Translations under genes and position numbers: made by a program
Sequence record: PQ330092.1
Length of the DNA stretch: 64,000 nt
Strand: one strand, 5' to 3'
Notes under the pieces: generated by a model
Told to the model about the DNA's origin: nothing
The model's input: the letters and a program-made list of their open reading frames with translations, nothing else
Databases searched by the model: none
Shown: positions 22,022-55,039 of the stretch, in pieces
Numbering within the stretch: position 1 is the stretch's first letter
How the letters are laid out: each line of letters starts with the position of its first letter

Positions 22022-22336
22022 TTAGCCTATGTTTCGAGTACCATTAAGATAATTCTGTACTCTTTGATTTGCTGGTATTCTAATTGTTACTCCACTTTTA
22101 AAATTATATATAGGATCTTCTCCTAGTATGTCTGGATTTAACAATGCGAAAATATAATATAAGCGTTCATTACCATACATTTCGTATGCTAAACGCCAAG
22201 GTTGATATTCATATTTCAATGGGATCTCATAAAAATCATCAGTATCAGCCGGAACAATATCACGTGGTAAATTATACCCAAGATACCATGTTTGTTTCAC
22301 CTTAGCGTAAGGTGAGTATTGACTATAGTTGGACAT
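22022..22336 (-). CDS. gp53: Baseplate wedge gp53-like (LysM-like) protein
   Basis: QPWRLAYEMYGNERLYYIFALLNP...DP..NFKSG..IRIP. Confidence 0.7.
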   Translation of the reverse strand: MSNYSQYSPYAKVKQTWYLGYNLPRDIVPADTDDFYEIPLKYEYQPWRLAYEMYGNERLYYIFALLNPDILGEDPIYNFKSGVTIRIPANQRVQNYLNGTRNIG

Positions 22337-23112: not shown

Positions 23113-23141
23113 TGGGACAAACTGCTTTTTGGTGCTATAAT
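23113..23141 (+). promoter_or_regulatory. Putative middle-class promoter (gp55-47-46 operon)
   Basis: TGGGACA-N16-TATAAT with extended -10 TG. Confidence 0.75.
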
Positions 23142-25064: not shown

Positions 25065-27212
25065 ATGCTAAACATTACACGTATATCTATGAGGAACTTC
25101 TTTTCATTTGGTAATGCACCACAATCAATTGAATTGAATGGTTCTGACATTTCATTAGTACTGGGTCAAAATAATGATGCAGTTATTGAAGGTGGTGACA
25201 GCACCGGACGTCGAAATGGTGTCGGGAAAAGTGCTATTATTCAAGGATTAGTTTTTGGATTATTTGGGAAAAGTATTGGTAATGATATTAAAATTCCTAA
25301 CTTAGTCAATAAAACTAATGGTAAAAATTGTGAAGTAGTTGTAGAGTTTGAAAAAGATGGTGTACAATATCTGGTTGAACGTGGGAGAAGTCCCACGTAT
25401 TTCAATTTTGTTACTTTAGGGAAAGATAATAAAATTGAAGATGAATCAAGGGGAGAAAAGAAAGACACACAAGAAGATTTGAATGAAATTCTTGGTATAT
25501 CTCAATTATTATTTGAACATATTGTAGTACTGAATGCTAACGTTGAACCTTTCTTAGCTTTATCCACACAAAAACAACGTGATATGATAGAAGAACTTCT
25601 TGGAATAACACAGTTGACGGAAAAAGCTGAAATGCTAAAGGAGATGTATAAGGATACTAAACGTTTAGCCGAACAAGAAAAGTTCAAAAATGAAACTGTA
25701 GCTGCAAGTAATGAACGTATTCAAAAAAGTATTGAGACACTACAAGAACAGGCAAACCAGTTTGAAATTGATAAAAATAATAGAGTATCTAAGTTAAATG
25801 AAGAGTTGAATATATATAAAACTTTAGACTTTAATGACCTCTATGAAGCTGCTGATATAAAAGAGAAAGCTCTTATTCATAACGCAAAGCGTGGGGAAAT
25901 CGAACGCCGTGTACAAGAGTTGGCTTTAAAATTTGATGCATATGACCGTGAACTTGAAAGATCTAAAAGAGCATTAAATCTAAGCATTGATAAGCTAAAA
26001 ACTATTGATATTAGTGCAGAATTGGAAAATCATAATGAGTTGGAGATATGGAAACAGTTAGAGGGTATTCTAAAAGAGAATAATAACCAAAAACGTTTCA
26101 AAGAACAAAAACTAAACTCACTAAAAATAGCTTTAAAAGGATATGAATGTTCAATTAATGCTGAAATTGACAAATTATCAACAGTTGAAAACAGCAAATG
26201 TCCACTTTGTATGTCTGAATTAGAACATAACGAACATACTTCTTCAATTAAAGACAAAATCCAAAGTACTATTAATGATCTTCAAGCTAAAATTGATAGT
26301 TCTTCTTCTGAAATTGAAACATTACTTCAAGAAATTGATAGTATTGAGATTTTTGATATGCCACCTAAGCCTGTGACATATTATAATACACTTTCAGAAG
26401 CACAAATGCATGAACATAAGCTTCAAGAATTGGTCAGAAAGAGTGAAGAAGAACAAATAAACATCTATGCAAATGAACTTATGTCATCATATGATGAACT
26501 TAACTCATATGAACTAATGGAAGTTCCAGATACATTAAACAAATATGAAGTTAAAGAGTTAGAAATGACTGTAAATTCATTATCACAGCAATTAGATCGT
26601 GAATTGAAGACTACTAACACATTTATTAGCCAAATTAATACCCTGAAGACTGATTCTTTAGTACCAATCGATTATAGCGACTATAATAATCTTGATAAAA
26701 TGTCAAATCACCAAGATTTCTTGGTTAAATTACTTTTAAACAAGGATTCTTATGTCCGTAAACGTATTATTGAGCAAAATATCTCATATTTGAATACACG
26801 ACTTCAGTACTATATCGATATGTGCGGTTCTGAGCATAATGTTGTGTTTTTGAATGATTTGAGTGTTGAAATTGAGAAGAGTGGACAGTACTTTGACTAT
26901 AAACAGCTTAGTAGAGGTGAGCGTACAAGGGTAAACATCGCATTATCTTGTGCTTTCCGTGATACATATGAGTCATTATACCAAAGTATTAATATTCTTA
27001 TCATTGATGAGATGATTGACCAAGGTCTTGACTCAAGTGGTGTTCTACGTGTGTGGTCTATCTTCCAAGATATGGCTGCTGTACGTGGTAAGAACGTTTA
27101 TGCTATTTCCCACAGAGAAGAGTTACTATCTAAGACTGAAAAAATCCTCAAAGTTGTTAAAGAGGACGGTTTCAGTACTGTTGAATATGCAACCCTTGAC
27201 GATGTTTTCTAA
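25065..27212 (+). CDS. gp46: Rad50/SbcC-like recombination ATPase
   Basis: Walker A NGVGKS, coiled coil with CPLC hook, LSRGE signature, IIDE Walker B. Confidence 0.92.
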   Translation: MLNITRISMRNFFSFGNAPQSIELNGSDISLVLGQNNDAVIEGGDSTGRRNGVGKSAIIQGLVFGLFGKSIGNDIKIPNLVNKTNGKNCEVVVEFEKDGVQYLVERGRSPTYFNFVTLGKDNKIEDESRGEKKDTQEDLNEILGISQLLFEHIVVLNANVEPFLALSTQKQRDMIEELLGITQLTEKAEMLKEMYKDTKRLAEQEKFKNETVAASNERIQKSIETLQEQANQFEIDKNNRVSKLNEELNIYKTLDFNDLYEAADIKEKALIHNAKRGEIERRVQELALKFDAYDRELERSKRALNLSIDKLKTIDISAELENHNELEIWKQLEGILKENNNQKRFKEQKLNSLKIALKGYECSINAEIDKLSTVENSKCPLCMSELEHNEHTSSIKDKIQSTINDLQAKIDSSSSEIETLLQEIDSIEIFDMPPKPVTYYNTLSEAQMHEHKLQELVRKSEEEQINIYANELMSSYDELNSYELMEVPDTLNKYEVKELEMTVNSLSQQLDRELKTTNTFISQINTLKTDSLVPIDYSDYNNLDKMSNHQDFLVKLLLNKDSYVRKRIIEQNISYLNTRLQYYIDMCGSEHNVVFLNDLSVEIEKSGQYFDYKQLSRGERTRVNIALSCAFRDTYESLYQSINILIIDEMIDQGLDSSGVLRVWSIFQDMAAVRGKNVYAISHREELLSKTEKILKVVKEDGFSTVEYATLDDVF

Positions 27213-27220
27213 TTAAAGAT

Positions 27221-27247
27221 AAAGGGAGCCTTAGCTCCCTTTTTTTA
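27221..27247. terminator. Bidirectional terminator between gp46 and Endo VII
   Basis: AAAGGGAGC-CTTA-GCTCCCTTT plus T-run. Confidence 0.85.
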
Positions 27248-27722
27248 TATCAACCATATTTAATTTACCGTCCTTAATCAGCTTTCTAGCTTGCTTTACA
27301 CGAGCAGTAGTGTTACTACCAGGGACAACTCCTAACCCTTCCAGAATCGCGTTTTGCTGTGTTGCTGGAAGCCTTTTAAACTTATTAACATCCACAGTTA
27401 GTGCAGTGTGATGTATAACTTGTTCATCGTCAGGAATGCTGTTATTACGCTCTAAGTAATCAGCAAGATTTCTGAGTACCTCATATAATGGTTTATCAGT
27501 TAAGTGCTTCATATATCGATTGAAGCTGTTTTGTACCTTTCCTTCCCAAGCATTGACTTCATTTTGAAGAACTTGTCTACAATGTTGGTTACCATAGTGG
27601 TAGTGATCCAGTACTGGTTTAGTTATTGGTTCTTTAATTATAGGATCTATTCCATTTTGTTTCTTTAGCAATTCGTTTCGATAGTTTGCAGCATCCTTAC
27701 TATCTTTTAATCTTTTTTTCAT
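27231..27722 (-). CDS. gp49: Recombination/packaging endonuclease VII-like
   Basis: QNG.....LDH.H.......L....NA.EG....F.R...L.NL..YL...IH pattern matches T4 Endo VII, but Zn cysteines are absent. Confidence 0.7.
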   Translation of the reverse strand: MKKRLKDSKDAANYRNELLKKQNGIDPIIKEPITKPVLDHYHYGNQHCRQVLQNEVNAWEGKVQNSFNRYMKHLTDKPLYEVLRNLADYLERNNSIPDDEQVIHHTALTVDVNKFKRLPATQQNAILEGLGVVPGSNTTARVKQARKLIKDGKLNMVDIKKGS

Positions 27723-27752
27723 AATTCCTCACCAAACTATTTGTTATCAAAA

Positions 27753-27760
27753 TATTTATA
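27753..27760 (-). promoter_or_regulatory. Late promoter for Endo VII
   Basis: Perfect TATAAATA. Confidence 0.7.
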
Positions 27761-27813
27761 GATTAGTTATTTGCAATATTTTAAGTACTTAATGAATATT
27801 TTTATAAAAATAG

Positions 27814-27842
27814 TGAGACAACTTTAAAGTTTGTGCTATAAT
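27814..27842 (+). promoter_or_regulatory. Putative middle-class promoter driving an ORF-free region
   Basis: TGAGACA-N16-TATAAT with extended -10 TG. Confidence 0.75.
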
Positions 27843-27848
27843 GTTTGT

Positions 27849-28347
27849 TGTAGTAATGACAATCCTGTTGAATGCAGAAATGCATATAAATTAGAACCTG
27901 ATCCTATCGAAAATGTAGATGGCAGATGAGCAGTTCAACAGTGCGATGAGCAAAAGAAACCCGTTAGATGTGGGCATAGTTTGAACCCCTCACGGCAATG
28001 CGGCTCAATAAAGAACTCCGATAAGCATACAGAGAGTTCCTAGATAGACATATAAGGATCGCACCTTACCAGATTTGCTAAGGGAGTTTATTAAGTGATT
28101 TTAATAAACAGCCTGAAGTTTGATTGTATAGACTTTCAGGTGAGTGTCAGGATGATTAAGACTGACGACCGTTGCACATGACTGCGATAGAGAGAAACAG
28201 AGCAACCCGCTTTCGTTCTTAATATATTTTTAAGAAATTCGCAATACAATAAATGCTGAAACCATCAGCGTCAAGAAATAGAGACTTCATTGTCTCTTTT
28301 TTATTGTCTTCATTCCCCTGCGGGGGGATGAAAATGTCCTCAACAAA
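27849..28347 (+). ncRNA. Candidate large structured non-coding RNA, family not recognised
   Basis: Own promoter, no ORF over about 25 codons seen on the sense strand, at least 10 stems including a GAAA tetraloop and G-U pairs valid only on the + strand, terminator-like hairpin at 28280-28302. Confidence 0.6.
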
Positions 28348-28400
28348 TCCCGTCAAGTATTAAATCTTTTAAAGTTCTTTATAATTTAATTTAATTAAAT

Positions 28401-28460
28401 GAATATGAGTTACGTAGTAACGAATATTCTTCAGCTAACGAATGAAATGAGTTAGATGAA
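28401..28460 (+). other. Two tandem hairpins with GNA triloops and tandem G.A pairs in an AT-rich tract (candidate origin element)
   Basis: 28401-28429 GAATAT-GA-GTTAC-GTA-GTAAC-GA-ATATTC; 28430-28460 TTCA-G-CTAAC-GA-AT-GAA-AT-GA-GTTAG-A-TGAA. Confidence 0.55.
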
Positions 28461-28522
28461 TCCAATAATATTAAAATTAATCCTTTCATAATTCAATTCA
28501 AATAATTCTGTAGTTTAAAACC

Positions 28523-28551
28523 AAAAAAAAAAACCAGCAACAATGTGCTGG
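28523..28551 (-). terminator. Terminator of the gp26/gp51 operon
   Basis: Minus strand CCAGCA-CATTGT-TGCTGG followed by T11. Confidence 0.8.
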
Positions 28552-28562
28552 CTATATGAAAA

Positions 28563-28772
28563 TTAGTGCTTCTCGTTTTGTTTTTTAATTTTTTTATTAA
28601 AAGACTTAACTAATAAGTCTCTATCTATTAATGGCATATTAAGGAGTGTTCCATAGTCAATGTTATCCATATATACAGAACATTCCATTAGTGCATTTTT
28701 GATTTCTGACTTATTCAGTTCTATCTCCTTCAGTACTTCTTGTATTTCTTCAGGAGATGACTGGAGAAGCAT
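28563..28772 (-). CDS. Small tail/baseplate assembly chaperone (gp51 C-terminal or 'T'-like segment)
   Basis: TAATG overlap with gp26-like gene; IDYGTLLNMPLIDRD resembles the short second segment of tail assembly chaperones. Confidence 0.5.
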   Translation of the reverse strand: MLLQSSPEEIQEVLKEIELNKSEIKNALMECSVYMDNIDYGTLLNMPLIDRDLLVKSFNKKIKKQNEKH

Positions 28773-46115: not shown

Positions 46116-46144
46116 TGAGACAAGCATCATTTTTGAGATATAAT
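46116..46144 (+). promoter_or_regulatory. Putative middle-class promoter (sliding clamp)
   Basis: TGAGACA-N16-TATAAT. Confidence 0.75.
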
Positions 46145-55010: not shown

Positions 55011-55039
55011 TGGGACAGTATAAAAACCTGTGCTATAAT
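55011..55039 (+). promoter_or_regulatory. Putative middle-class promoter (ssb-uvsX-uvsY)
   Basis: TGGGACA-N16-TATAAT with extended -10 TG. Confidence 0.75.

Follow-up and report, generated by a model that had tools for sequence, protein, structure and literature searches.

A multi-copy, pseudoknotted non-coding RNA of jumbo phages that matches no catalogued RNA family

The window analyzed here is the last 64 kb (64,000 nucleotides) of Escherichia phage JP4 (record PQ330092.1), a member of the 121Q/PBECO4 group. Positions 27723–28562 (840 nt) are the only stretch of 250 nt or more in it that has no open reading frame (ORF) of 60 or more amino acids. This gap lies within the recombination/replication gene block, at the endoVII locus, and the locus has a raised GC content (0.38–0.45) relative to the flanks (0.20–0.27). 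A phage middle-type promoter precedes the RNA gene on the + strand (27814–27842); it consists of TGAGACA (27814–20), a 16-nt spacer and an extended −10 element TGcTATAAT, with TATAAT at 27837–42, and the inferred start is about 27849. On the right a convergent terminator lies at 28532–28553 with its T-run on the − strand. The promoter class, TG(A/G)(A/G)AC(A/G)-N14–17-TATAAT, occurs at 24 + strand sites in JP4, including all four copies of the RNA described below, the primase and exonuclease genes and a tRNA, and it precedes every homolog examined, island copies included. It matches the "divergent RpoD-like" promoter with a TGAAACG −35 element that has been described for CBB and GAP32 (PMC5259590).

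The first-pass annotation had proposed that this gap encodes a promoter-driven, structured non-coding RNA of about 500 nt, and the observation holds and is in fact larger than was first reported. The refuting conditions set beforehand included folding no better than shuffled controls, an absence of covarying stems in homologs and, for novelty only, a confident match to a known Rfam family, and none of these was found. The minimum free energy is −133.8 kcal/mol, with z = −3.6 against 100 dinucleotide shuffles on the + strand and z = −3.05 on the − strand. Across 28 non-redundant homologs, 100 modeled base pairs in 19 helices are 95.9% canonical, against 80.7% in shuffles and 38–43% when partners are slid, and 73 pairs carry compensatory double changes, against 39.7 in shuffles and 20–29 when slid; no shuffle (0/500) reached any of these measures. 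G·U cells outnumber A·C cells 186 to 31, which fixes the + strand, as the earlier argument from G-U pairs requires. No ORF is conserved in strand, frame or position, and every + strand frame has 5–23 stops in all 28 homologs.

Most of the stems originally picked out by eye are present in the sequence and are kept by compensatory changes in homologs, namely 27865–72/27934–41, 27947–51/28003–07, 28013–18/28034–39, TAAGG 28053–57/CCTTA 28064–68, 28086–28109 (outer pairs only), 28112–40, 28146–66, GTTGC/GCAAC 28171–75/28202–06, 28216–36, 28280–97 and 28309–32. The GAAA-capped hairpin at 27872–85 is a variable hairpin that is present at that position in all copies, and the register of hairpin 28255–69 differs between copies. 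Two of the proposed pairings are not supported: the 5′–3′ closure helix GACAAT 27858–63/ATTGTC 28303–08, whose aligned columns are mostly non-pairs, and the alternative pairing of CCTTA with 28079–83, since covariation supports only the 28053–57 partner.

In the 5′ domain (27865–27944), pseudoknot PK1 pairs the 5′ strand CUGUUGAA (27865–72) with UUCAACAG (27934–41), the latter being the loop of a hairpin whose stem is GCA 27930–32/UGC 27942–44. Between the PK1 strands lie the variable GAAA-capped hairpin (27873–84) and hairpin P2 (27898–27908/27918–25) with the conserved loop GAAAAUGUA, followed by the invariant GAUGAG (27925–30). Helices 1 and 2 of the model each have double changes in 7 of 8 pairs, and in helix 3 column 110:123 is CG10/AU9/UA9 with no exception; one clade of homologs (designated L016) has a 5-bp stem and a 5-bp loop pairing instead. 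In the central domain (27947–28068), H4 is UGAGC 27947–51/GCUCA 28003–07 (double changes in 3 of 5 pairs), H5 is CCGU 27961–64/ACGG 27992–95 (4 of 4) and encloses a variable insert, H7 is 28013–18/28034–39 (6 of 6), and H8 is UAAGG 28053–57/CCUUA 28064–68. PK3 pairs AUG 27998–28000 with CAU 28049–51; it is seen as AUG/CAU, AUA/UAU and ACA/UGU and is 100% paired in 28 sequences. The motifs AUAAAG and GAUAGA are conserved in this domain.

The next section (28078–28167) begins with the invariant CUAAGGGAG (28078–86), to which no partner could be assigned because it never varies, and continues with a variable hairpin (28086–28109) that is a site of module insertions in paralogs. Hairpin H11 (28112–21/28130–40; 10 of 11 pairs with double changes) follows, and its loop AUUGUAU (28123–29) is the 5′ strand of PK2; hairpin H13 is GUCAG 28146–50/CUGAC 28162–66 (3 of 4). 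The most conserved core (28167–28250) is an H-type pseudoknot in which PK4 (GUUGC 28171–75/GCAAC 28202–06) crosses H16 (GAGAG 28190–94/CUUUC 28210–14) and H15 (UGCGA 28183–87/UCGCA 28239–43). Hairpin H17 is 28216–22/28230–36, and the PK2 3′ strand is AUACAAU (28244–50). PK4 is 100% paired with three covarying positions, H15 has 4 of 5 pairs with double changes, and PK2 is 98% paired with double changes in all 7 pairs, with at least seven different complementary 7-mers seen. The otherwise invariant H16 is confirmed by compensatory RaK2 variants AGGGG/CCUCU and GGACG/CGUUC. An RNAalifold pairing of CUAAGGG with GACCGUUG was partly replaced by the covarying PK4; its remaining GG/CC pairs never vary and so are unproven. 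Similarly, a predicted UGA/UCA pairing between GAUGAG and the 3′ CGUCA motif never varies and remains only a prediction.

Downstream of the core, hairpin GCUGA 28255–59/UCAGC 28265–69 is followed by the first copy of the motif CGUCAAG (28269–75), which changes in concert with its second copy. A terminator scan identified an intrinsic-terminator-like hairpin, AGAGAC/GUCUCU plus a U-run, at 28280–28302 (helix 18; 4 of 5 pairs with double changes), and this is the likely 3′ end of a short isoform of about 455 nt. It is present in JP4 copies A and B (the four JP4 copies being called A to D) and in paralog types I and V, but absent from JP4 copies C and D and from types III and IV, and is therefore an optional element inside the conserved unit. 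A universal 3′ element (28309–28357) then comprises a 10-bp hairpin (28309–18/28323–32; UGCG loop, G-rich 3′ arm) and the conserved tail CAAAUCCCGUCAAG (28344–57), which ends in the second CGUCAAG; this is the likely end of a long isoform of about 510 nt. The hairpin (helix 19) is 95.5% paired, with 7 of 8 pairs varying on one side only through G·U, which marks a + strand RNA hairpin, and the element is present in essentially all 42 full-length homologs and in RaK2. A further conserved module at 28400–28457 is of uncertain membership; it contains AUGAAUAUGAG, hairpin GUUAC-GUA-GUAAC (28409–21), ACGAAUAUUCUU and hairpin CUAAC 28435–39/GUUAG 28451–55. Equivalent modules follow most homologs, and the second hairpin covaries (CAUUC/GAAUG, CAAUC/GAUUG, CAUAC/GUAUG, CUAAC/GUUAG). 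It may be a 3′ extension of the RNA or the leader of a separate, possibly late, transcript.

The RNA is not unique in the genome. A covariance model of the core (R1) finds exactly four copies in the 364 kb of JP4, with scores of 74–123 bits, and the copies lie at 76.3, 201.4, 255.8 and 334.6 kb, all on the + strand. GAP32, CBB, Yen9-04 and BF-like phages carry five paralog types, each of which is conserved across them, and RaK2 has divergent copies in syntenic positions. Nucleotide identity across phage genera is 67–77%. The synteny of individual copies is kept between JP4 and RaK2, one after the sigma-factor gene and one before the dam methylase, which points to non-redundant functions, although the clustering of the four JP4 copies in one clade of the tree could reflect gene conversion or recent duplication rather than ancient subfunctionalization. 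At the conserved endoVII locus the next gene is convergent in the window and in at least six homologous loci, including GAP32 and BF, and so the RNA is a stand-alone gene there and not a leader.

Rare copies with the same phage promoter sit in integrative islands of E. coli and Citrobacter, as cargo next to candidate defense genes: PDC-M45 (dual-OB plus DUF488) in E. coli and a CI/LexA-like repressor in the Citrobacter island. A distant-mode blastn search of 5,426 E. coli genomes at E ≤ 10 hit only the two islands and found no similarity to any E. coli RNA, and a search of a plasmid collection found no match. A Lewinella genome hit and about ten small IMG/VR contigs from pattern scans had no nhmmer support and were chance matches. 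The island proteins have no JP4 homologs except one DUF4326 protein, so the islands are not phage fragments. The wider island family is widespread and mostly lacks the RNA; Yersinia and Klebsiella islands of the same family lack it (the Klebsiella members carry SLATT), which rules out the idea that it is a fixed component of these islands.

Comparison with Rfam 15 (4,227 covariance models, including RNase P, tmRNA, group I and II introns, GOLLD, ROOL, HEARO, OLE, raiA, 6S and known ribozymes) gave no hit at gathering thresholds in the whole window. At E ≤ 10, positions 27700–28600 gave only sub-threshold matches, mostly driven by terminator hairpins, the best inside the RNA being 21.5 bits against a threshold of 51.4. 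ARAGORN found no tRNA or tmRNA gene in the window, and the Rfam tmRNA model scored 5.5 bits. Resemblances to RNase P, group I/II introns, hammerhead, T-loop and 11-nt-receptor motifs noticed by eye, among them that of GAGAGAAACAGAGCAACCCGC to M1 RNA, were not borne out by the models or by the derived helix order, which does not map onto the P1–P18 architecture of bacterial RNase P RNA with its P4 pseudoknot of CR-I/CR-V sequences. With regard to introns, no split ORF flanks any of the four copies, and the 3′ hairpin has no domain-V bulge or AGC triad. Literature searches found no description of this RNA, although it could still be an unnamed entry among the 10,006 candidates of PMC10690425, whose tables were not inspected.

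Among characterized systems, the large "ornate" phage- and prophage-associated RNAs GOLLD and ROOL, which form homo-oligomeric assemblies by cryo-EM (PMC12286853), are similar in their large size (about 0.5 kb), many helices with conserved junctions and pseudoknots, stand-alone phage-borne genes, lack of an associated protein gene and lack of a known function. However, neither model is listed even at E ≤ 10, and the present RNA occurs in Enterobacterales jumbo myoviruses rather than in Lactobacillales, rumen or lake phages, and is uniquely present as 4–5 diverged, individually conserved paralogs per genome. Pseudomonas phage PA5oct, a distantly related jumbo phage of the wider Rak2-related clade, has four + strand, ORF-less transcribed regions of 236–619 nt defined by RNA-seq (ncRNA001–004; PMC7318152), also without known function. 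No homology to them was detectable; nhmmer gives only a marginal hit to the 3′ hairpin of ncRNA004 (E = 0.0035), and model R1 finds nothing inside the four ncRNAs.

The first-pass interpretation is thus only partly supported. Its core inference, a promoter-driven, structured + strand RNA of about 500 nt that matches no known family, is strongly supported, but none of its three suggested functions is shown: origin or R-loop priming is still possible, a scaffold or decoy is compatible with the evidence and close to the reading preferred here, and partnership with Endo VII is unlikely, because three of the four JP4 copies and the island copies lie next to unrelated genes. It missed that the RNA is multi-copy, that the fold is pseudoknotted, that conservation runs past the terminator-like hairpin to about 28357 and that copies occur in bacterial islands.

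The explanation favored here, with moderate confidence, is that positions 27849 to about 28302/28357 (+ strand) are a stand-alone gene for a large folded RNA of roughly 450–515 nt that acts in trans. In this view host RNA polymerase, redirected to the middle-type promoter class, would transcribe it, with part of the transcripts probably stopping at the internal hairpin plus U-run and part continuing through the universal 3′ hairpin and CAAAUCCCGUCAAG tail. The RNA folds into a compact multi-domain structure of at least 15 helices locked by four long-range pseudoknots, and since the invariant nucleotides sit in junctions and in the PK4/H16 core, the folded molecule would be the functional entity. 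Most likely it would be the RNA subunit of a phage ribonucleoprotein, a ribozyme-like core or an RNA–RNA assembly of the kind recently found for other large phage-associated RNAs, working during the replication/recombination (middle) period. The analysis itself establishes the existence of the gene, its strand, structure, copy number, distribution, promoter class, non-coding nature and stand-alone arrangement, whereas the transcript start, ends and abundance are inferred, as the searched literature holds no transcript data for any phage of this clade, and action in trans and any molecular partner are likewise inferred. The favored reading explains neither the optional terminator-like hairpin inside the conserved unit nor the hairpin plus U-run that lies between promoter and RNA in copy C and type III, and since most copies are followed by + strand genes, a cis effect on downstream expression cannot be excluded for them.

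Of the alternatives, that each copy marks a replication origin is possible but unlikely. The middle-promoter transcript would form a persistent RNA–DNA hybrid in the AT-rich DNA downstream and prime leading-strand synthesis as at T4 oriF/oriG, the folded part would position or stabilize the hybrid as in ColE1 RNA II (also about 500 nt), and islands would carry it in order to be replicated by the infecting phage. The promoter is of the middle type, as for the T4 origin transcripts, and is the class that also drives replication genes, the 4–5 dispersed, co-oriented copies are similar in number to T4 origins, the RNA occurs in integrative islands, and the phage encodes an RNase H. GC is 0.21–0.23 at 28375–28599, just downstream, but the whole phage is AT-rich and this region lies about 500 nt from the promoter. 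However, R-loop origins need no conserved fold, and T4 origin RNAs are not known to share one, yet this RNA has four covarying pseudoknots and about 100 invariant positions; five paralog types are each maintained across genera whereas origins are usually redundant; and most members of the same island family lack the RNA, so it is not the islands' replication module. Cumulative GC skew shows no inflection at the copies, but it tracks gene orientation and is uninformative as an origin test. A cis-acting leader is also doubtful. Such a giant 5′ element would modify the transcribing polymerase, as the processive antitermination RNAs HK022 put and EAR do, or act as an attenuator or sensor controlling read-through of the internal terminator. 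The order of promoter, structured domain, terminator-like hairpin and further sequence fits this idea, and JP4 copies B, C and D, the island copies and several paralog types are followed by + strand genes (for example, an ADP-ribosylglycohydrolase-like ORF after type I). On the other hand, at the endoVII locus the RNA runs into a convergent gene and terminator, the terminator hairpin is absent from several types while the core is unchanged, its sequence varies freely with no third covarying strand that could act as an antiterminator, and the RNA is 4–8 times larger than known put or EAR elements.

A more specific form of trans action, also considered unlikely, is that an abundant folded RNA serves as a counter-defense or host-takeover decoy, sequestering or mimicking the ligand of a host factor such as an immune sensor, a nuclease, an RNA chaperone or the ribosome, with island copies being host-captured versions used to sense or jam the phage. 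The position of island copies beside candidate defense genes and the invariant, Shine–Dalgarno-like CUAAGGGAG are in its favor, but there is no similarity to any E. coli RNA in the search above and no experimental link to any defense system, and a decoy does not obviously need five conserved paralog types. That the locus is a degenerate coding region, a repeat or mobile-element scar, or chance structure in AT-rich spacer DNA has in its favor that several GenBank records annotate tiny "hypothetical protein" ORFs or a repeat_region over it, but it is effectively refuted by the lack of a conserved ORF and the massive compensatory variation, and it is also at odds with the cross-genus identity, the raised GC content and the dedicated promoter before every copy. 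A bolder possibility, which is not excluded but is improbable on present evidence, is that the five types are anciently diverged members of a previously unrecognized class of RNA that work together, for example as a hetero-oligomeric RNA machine or as ribozyme- or RNP-type subunits with different specificities; they would be essential for middle-phase biology of Rak2/121Q-like jumbo phages, and bacteria would have captured one type with its phage-only promoter into defense-type islands as an infection-triggered decoy or jammer.

Large, intricately folded RNAs without a known function are rare, and each one found so far (RNase P, group I and II introns, tmRNA, and more recently OLE, GOLLD and ROOL) has opened new biochemistry. 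The RNA described here sits in cultivable coliphages (121Q, PBECO4, phAPEC6, JP4 and others) that grow on laboratory E. coli, so it is directly accessible to genetics, probing and cryo-EM. Four covarying pseudoknots, 4–5 individually conserved paralogs per genome and capture by bacterial islands under a phage-specific promoter are unusual for a phage RNA, and together suggest an important function, possibly one contested between phage and host. Dozens of GenBank records currently annotate spurious small ORFs, or nothing, over these loci.

The region 27700–28600 of the window is 100% identical to positions 334441–335341 of Escherichia phage JP4 (PQ330092.1, 370,741 bp); the window is the last 64 kb of that record, so that window position equals record position minus 306,741. 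The region is also 99% or more identical to the corresponding DNA of 121Q, PBECO4, phAPEC6, Sharanji and other Asteriusvirus jumbo phages. Positions 27723–28562 are the only stretch of 250 nt or more in the window that is free of ORFs of 60 aa or more. A promoter-like site is present at its left side (TGAGACA at 27814–20, a 16-nt spacer, TG at −15/−14, and TATAAT at 27837–42), as are a terminator-like hairpin with a U-run at 28280–28302 and a convergent minus-strand terminator at 28532–53. The 499-nt stretch folds better than shuffled sequences (z = −3.6 on the plus strand and −3.05 on the minus strand) and is GC-richer (0.38–0.45) than its flanks (0.20–0.27). The observation made in the first-pass annotation, a structured and promoter-preceded gap in otherwise densely coding DNA, therefore holds. 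A search of the whole window with the Rfam 15 models gave nothing at gathering thresholds and, at E ≤ 10 on 27700–28600, only sub-threshold matches that are mostly driven by terminator hairpins; ARAGORN found no tRNA or tmRNA. Annotations of the homologous locus in GenBank records of related phages are inconsistent, and include nothing at all, strings of 30–60-aa “hypothetical proteins,” a “repeat_region” (UE-S1), or unrelated product names; none of them annotates an RNA. To the left of this region, a bidirectional terminator hairpin (AAAGGGAGC...GCTCCCTTT, with T-runs on both strands; 27221–27242) sits between the convergent genes for a 715-aa recombination-endonuclease subunit (25065–27212, plus strand) and endoVII (27231–27722, minus strand).

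The sequence belongs to a multi-copy family. A blastn search with settings for distant matches against 50,697 phage records hit 72 records, all of them Rak2/121Q/GAP32-like jumbo phages of Enterobacterales (Escherichia, Salmonella, Klebsiella, Erwinia, Yersinia, Serratia, Cronobacter and Pectobacterium phages, plus two “Xanthomonas” phages), with 67–77% identity across genera and 4–5 matching places in each genome. A divergent metagenomic member recovers the same 72 phage records, and among cultured phages the family is therefore confined to this clade. In JP4 (the window and record positions 1–300,000, leaving out 300,001–306,741), blastn, nhmmer and a covariance model of the core each find exactly four copies, all on the plus strand. 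Copy A is the window copy at 334.6 kb, which lies between endoVII (minus strand) and a small minus-strand gene; copy B at 255.8 kb is 72% identical to A; copy C at 201.4 kb lies before a hypothetical gene and a DNA methyltransferase and is 70% identical to A; and copy D at 76.3 kb lies directly after the RNA polymerase sigma-factor gene and is 85% identical to A over the 5′ 190 nt. The JP4 record annotates only tiny “hypothetical” ORFs at these places. Pattern scans of IMG/VR, metagenomes and GTDB genomes, followed by nhmmer, gave dozens of further full-length copies, and a tree of 42 full-length copies shows five paralogue types, each conserved across GAP32, CBB, Yen9-04, BF and related uncultured phages; for example, Yen9-04 has one copy of each type. 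RaK2 has divergent full-length copies whose synteny matches JP4: one follows the sigma-factor gene, like copy D, and one precedes a hypothetical gene and dam methylase, like copy C.

An alignment of 28 non-redundant homologues shows that this is a structured RNA read from the plus strand. RNAalifold predicted 81 pairs in this alignment, 52 of them with compensatory changes, and a scan of all column pairs followed by inspection added long-range pairings. The final model has 100 pairs in 19 helices, in which 95.9% of pairs are canonical (80.7% in shuffles and 38–43% when the 3′ partners were slid) and 73 pairs have changes on both sides (39.7 in shuffles and 20–29 when slid); none of 500 shuffles reached the observed value on any measure. 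G·U cells outnumber A·C cells 186 to 31, and the reverse strand would be only 90.2% paired. The longest ORFs differ in strand, frame and position among the homologues, and every plus-strand frame carries 5–23 stops.

Four of the helices are pseudoknots. In PK1, the 5′ strand 27865–72 pairs with the loop (27934–41) of a hairpin whose 3-bp stem is 27930–32/27942–44; the middle stem pair is C-G in 10 sequences, A-U in nine and U-A in nine, with no exception, and in one clade the stem is 5 bp and the loop pairing is 5 bp. In PK2, the loop of hairpin H11 (AUUGUAU, 28123–29) pairs with AUACAAU (28244–50) about 115 nt downstream. All seven PK2 positions show double changes, and at least seven different complementary 7-mers occur (AUUGUAU, GUCGAAU, UUCGAAU, AUCGAAU, AUUGCAU and ACUGAUA, plus CUUGAAU in RaK2). 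PK3 pairs AUG (27998–28000) with CAU (28049–51) and is also seen as AUA/UAU and ACA/UGU. PK4 pairs GUUGC (28171–75) with GCAAC (28202–06), with variants GUCAU/AUGAC, GUUAC/GUAAC and GUUGA/UCAAC; it crosses helices H15 and H16 and forms an H-type pseudoknot in the most conserved part of the molecule. Helix H16 (GAGAG/CUUUC) almost never varies among the 28 aligned homologues, but it is AGGGG/CCUCU and GGACG/CGUUC in the two RaK2 copies. The invariant CUAAGGGAG has no known partner.

The promoter motif TG(A/G)(A/G)AC(A/G)-N14–17-TATAAT, usually with an extended −10, occurs at 24 plus-strand sites in JP4, which include all four RNA copies, the starts of the primase, exonuclease and other genes, and a tRNA-Ser gene. 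Further sites of this class in the window lie at 23113–23141, 46116–46144 and 55011–55039 on the plus strand and at 22299–22271 on the minus strand. Every homologue inspected has the motif. It corresponds to the “divergent RpoD-like” promoter with a TGAAACG −35 element that was reported upstream of DNA-synthesis genes in CBB and GAP32 (PMC5259590), and it is therefore called middle-type here, the timing being inferred by analogy. In copy C (positions 1348–1415 of locus L006, the JP4 segment that carries it) and in type III (about positions 570–630 of locus L061, from Yen9-04), a strong hairpin followed by a run of 7–9 U lies between the promoter and the start of the conserved RNA; it could be an attenuator or a 5′ structural element.

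At the 3′ end, the terminator-like hairpin at 28280–28302 covaries but is optional; it is present in JP4 copies A and B and in types I and V, and absent from JP4 copies C and D and from types III and IV. The element that follows it is universal, and consists of a 10-bp hairpin (28309–32) and the tail CAAAUCCCGUCAAG (28344–57). This hairpin varies mainly through G·U wobbles, which is the signature of a plus-strand RNA. A short isoform of about 455 nt and a long isoform of about 510 nt are therefore expected. Two direct copies of CGUCAAG (28269–75 and 28351–57) change in concert between lineages (CGUCAAG twice, CGUCAG twice, CGUCAA(A/U) twice, UGUCA twice, and CUUCAAG twice in RaK2). The two copies stay identical to each other and are not complementary, which suggests one shared binding partner or processing activity, or two processing sites. 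About 50–100 nt further on lies a conserved module (28400–28457 here) composed of AUGAAUAUGAG, a hairpin at 28409–21, ACGAAUAUUCUU, and a second hairpin at 28435–55. Equivalent modules follow most homologues and their second hairpin covaries; the module may be a 3′ extension of the same RNA, or the leader of a separate, possibly late, transcript. Many homologues have a TATAAAT-like (T4-late-like) motif just after the CGUCAG tail.

In the window the RNA lies between two minus-strand genes, and its 3′ side is convergent with the next gene and its terminator. The same convergent arrangement on the 3′ side occurs at six other loci that include GAP32 and BF, so at this conserved locus the RNA cannot be a leader.

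Copies also occur outside phages. Two of 5,426 complete E. coli genomes carry a full-length copy, 70% identical over 94% of the query, in a roughly 10-kb island between ffs and ybaA (in strain LR-29-1, for example; locus L027). The island has integrase remnants, IS3, a resolvase, and a dual-OB/DUF488/DUF4326 cluster that matches the candidate defence system PDC-M45. Citrobacter amalonaticus P55 (locus L028) and one metagenome contig carry a copy directly downstream of a large serine integrase, followed by small genes and a divergent CI/LexA-like repressor. These copies keep the phage promoter and nest with paralogue type V in the tree. The islands are not phage fragments, since their proteins lack JP4 homologues except for one DUF4326 protein. 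A 118-aa island protein defines a widespread family of small integrative islands across Enterobacterales (at least 212 protein clusters at 90% identity; seen in loci L027, L028, L046 and L097–L102), which have a tyrosine or large serine integrase, a CI/LexA-like repressor in some members, conserved proteins of about 185–190 aa and 118 aa, a resolvase, and variable defence-like cargo such as PDC-M45 or SLATT. Only a few members carry the phage RNA with its phage promoter, and Yersinia and Klebsiella members lack it; the RNA with its promoter is therefore occasional cargo and not the backbone of these islands. A shared noncoding stretch with ATCGATCG-type repeats follows the RNA in the E. coli island, and the same stretch is present in Klebsiella islands that lack the RNA. 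No copy was found in a search of plasmids.

It is almost certain that these sequences are a real structured RNA gene family, and what the analysis demonstrates is a conserved, noncoding, plus-strand, multiply pseudoknotted RNA with a dedicated phage promoter, 4–5 paralogues per genome and a stand-alone arrangement. That it acts in trans as a folded molecule, as an RNP subunit, a ribozyme-like core or an RNA assembly, is an inference that appears more likely than not. The concentration of invariant nucleotides in junctions and in the PK4/H16 core is what one sees in ribozymes and in RNP or assembly RNAs, and the separate conservation of five paralogue types, and of the synteny of individual copies, argues for nonredundant roles. 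The interpretation given in the first-pass annotation, an undescribed phage RNA acting in origin priming, as a scaffold or decoy or, least likely, as a partner of Endo VII, is partly supported: its core, a promoter-driven, structured, plus-strand noncoding RNA, is strongly supported, whereas none of the three proposed functions is shown. An origin or primer transcript is attractive because of the middle-type promoter, the copy number, the AT-rich DNA downstream and the capture by islands, but it explains neither the fold nor the conservation of paralogue types and seems unlikely. A counter-defence decoy, which is a sub-case of trans action suggested by the island context, is similarly doubtful, and a cis-acting leader or antiterminator, which is contradicted at the endoVII locus, is also improbable. 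Nonfunctional DNA is effectively excluded.

The closest RNAs in kind are GOLLD and ROOL, which are large, ornate, phage-associated RNAs of unknown function that form RNA-only oligomers (PMC12286853); membership is excluded because their covariance models give no match. No description of the present RNA was found in the literature searched, although it might be an unnamed entry in a catalogue of 10,006 viral candidate RNAs. The four ncRNAs defined by RNA-seq in the distant relative PA5oct (PMC7318152) are not detectably homologous; the 3′ hairpin UUCCUUCCCAAACGGGGAGGAAAU of PA5oct ncRNA004 (positions 1053–1141 of locus L054, its 3′ end) weakly resembles the universal 3′ hairpin of the family (nhmmer E = 0.0035), but the rest of that ncRNA shows no detectable similarity. 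Outside the window, the deposited JP4 record contains a direct duplication of about 20.1 kb (about 122.5–142.6 kb and 142.6–162.7 kb; loci L004 and L005), with identical gene strings offset by 20,114 bp, which is probably the terminal repeat placed internally. Each copy of this duplication has an ORF-poor stretch of about 2 kb that has no similarity to the RNA family but carries the same promoter class (record positions 123070 and 143184), so it may hold another noncoding transcript.
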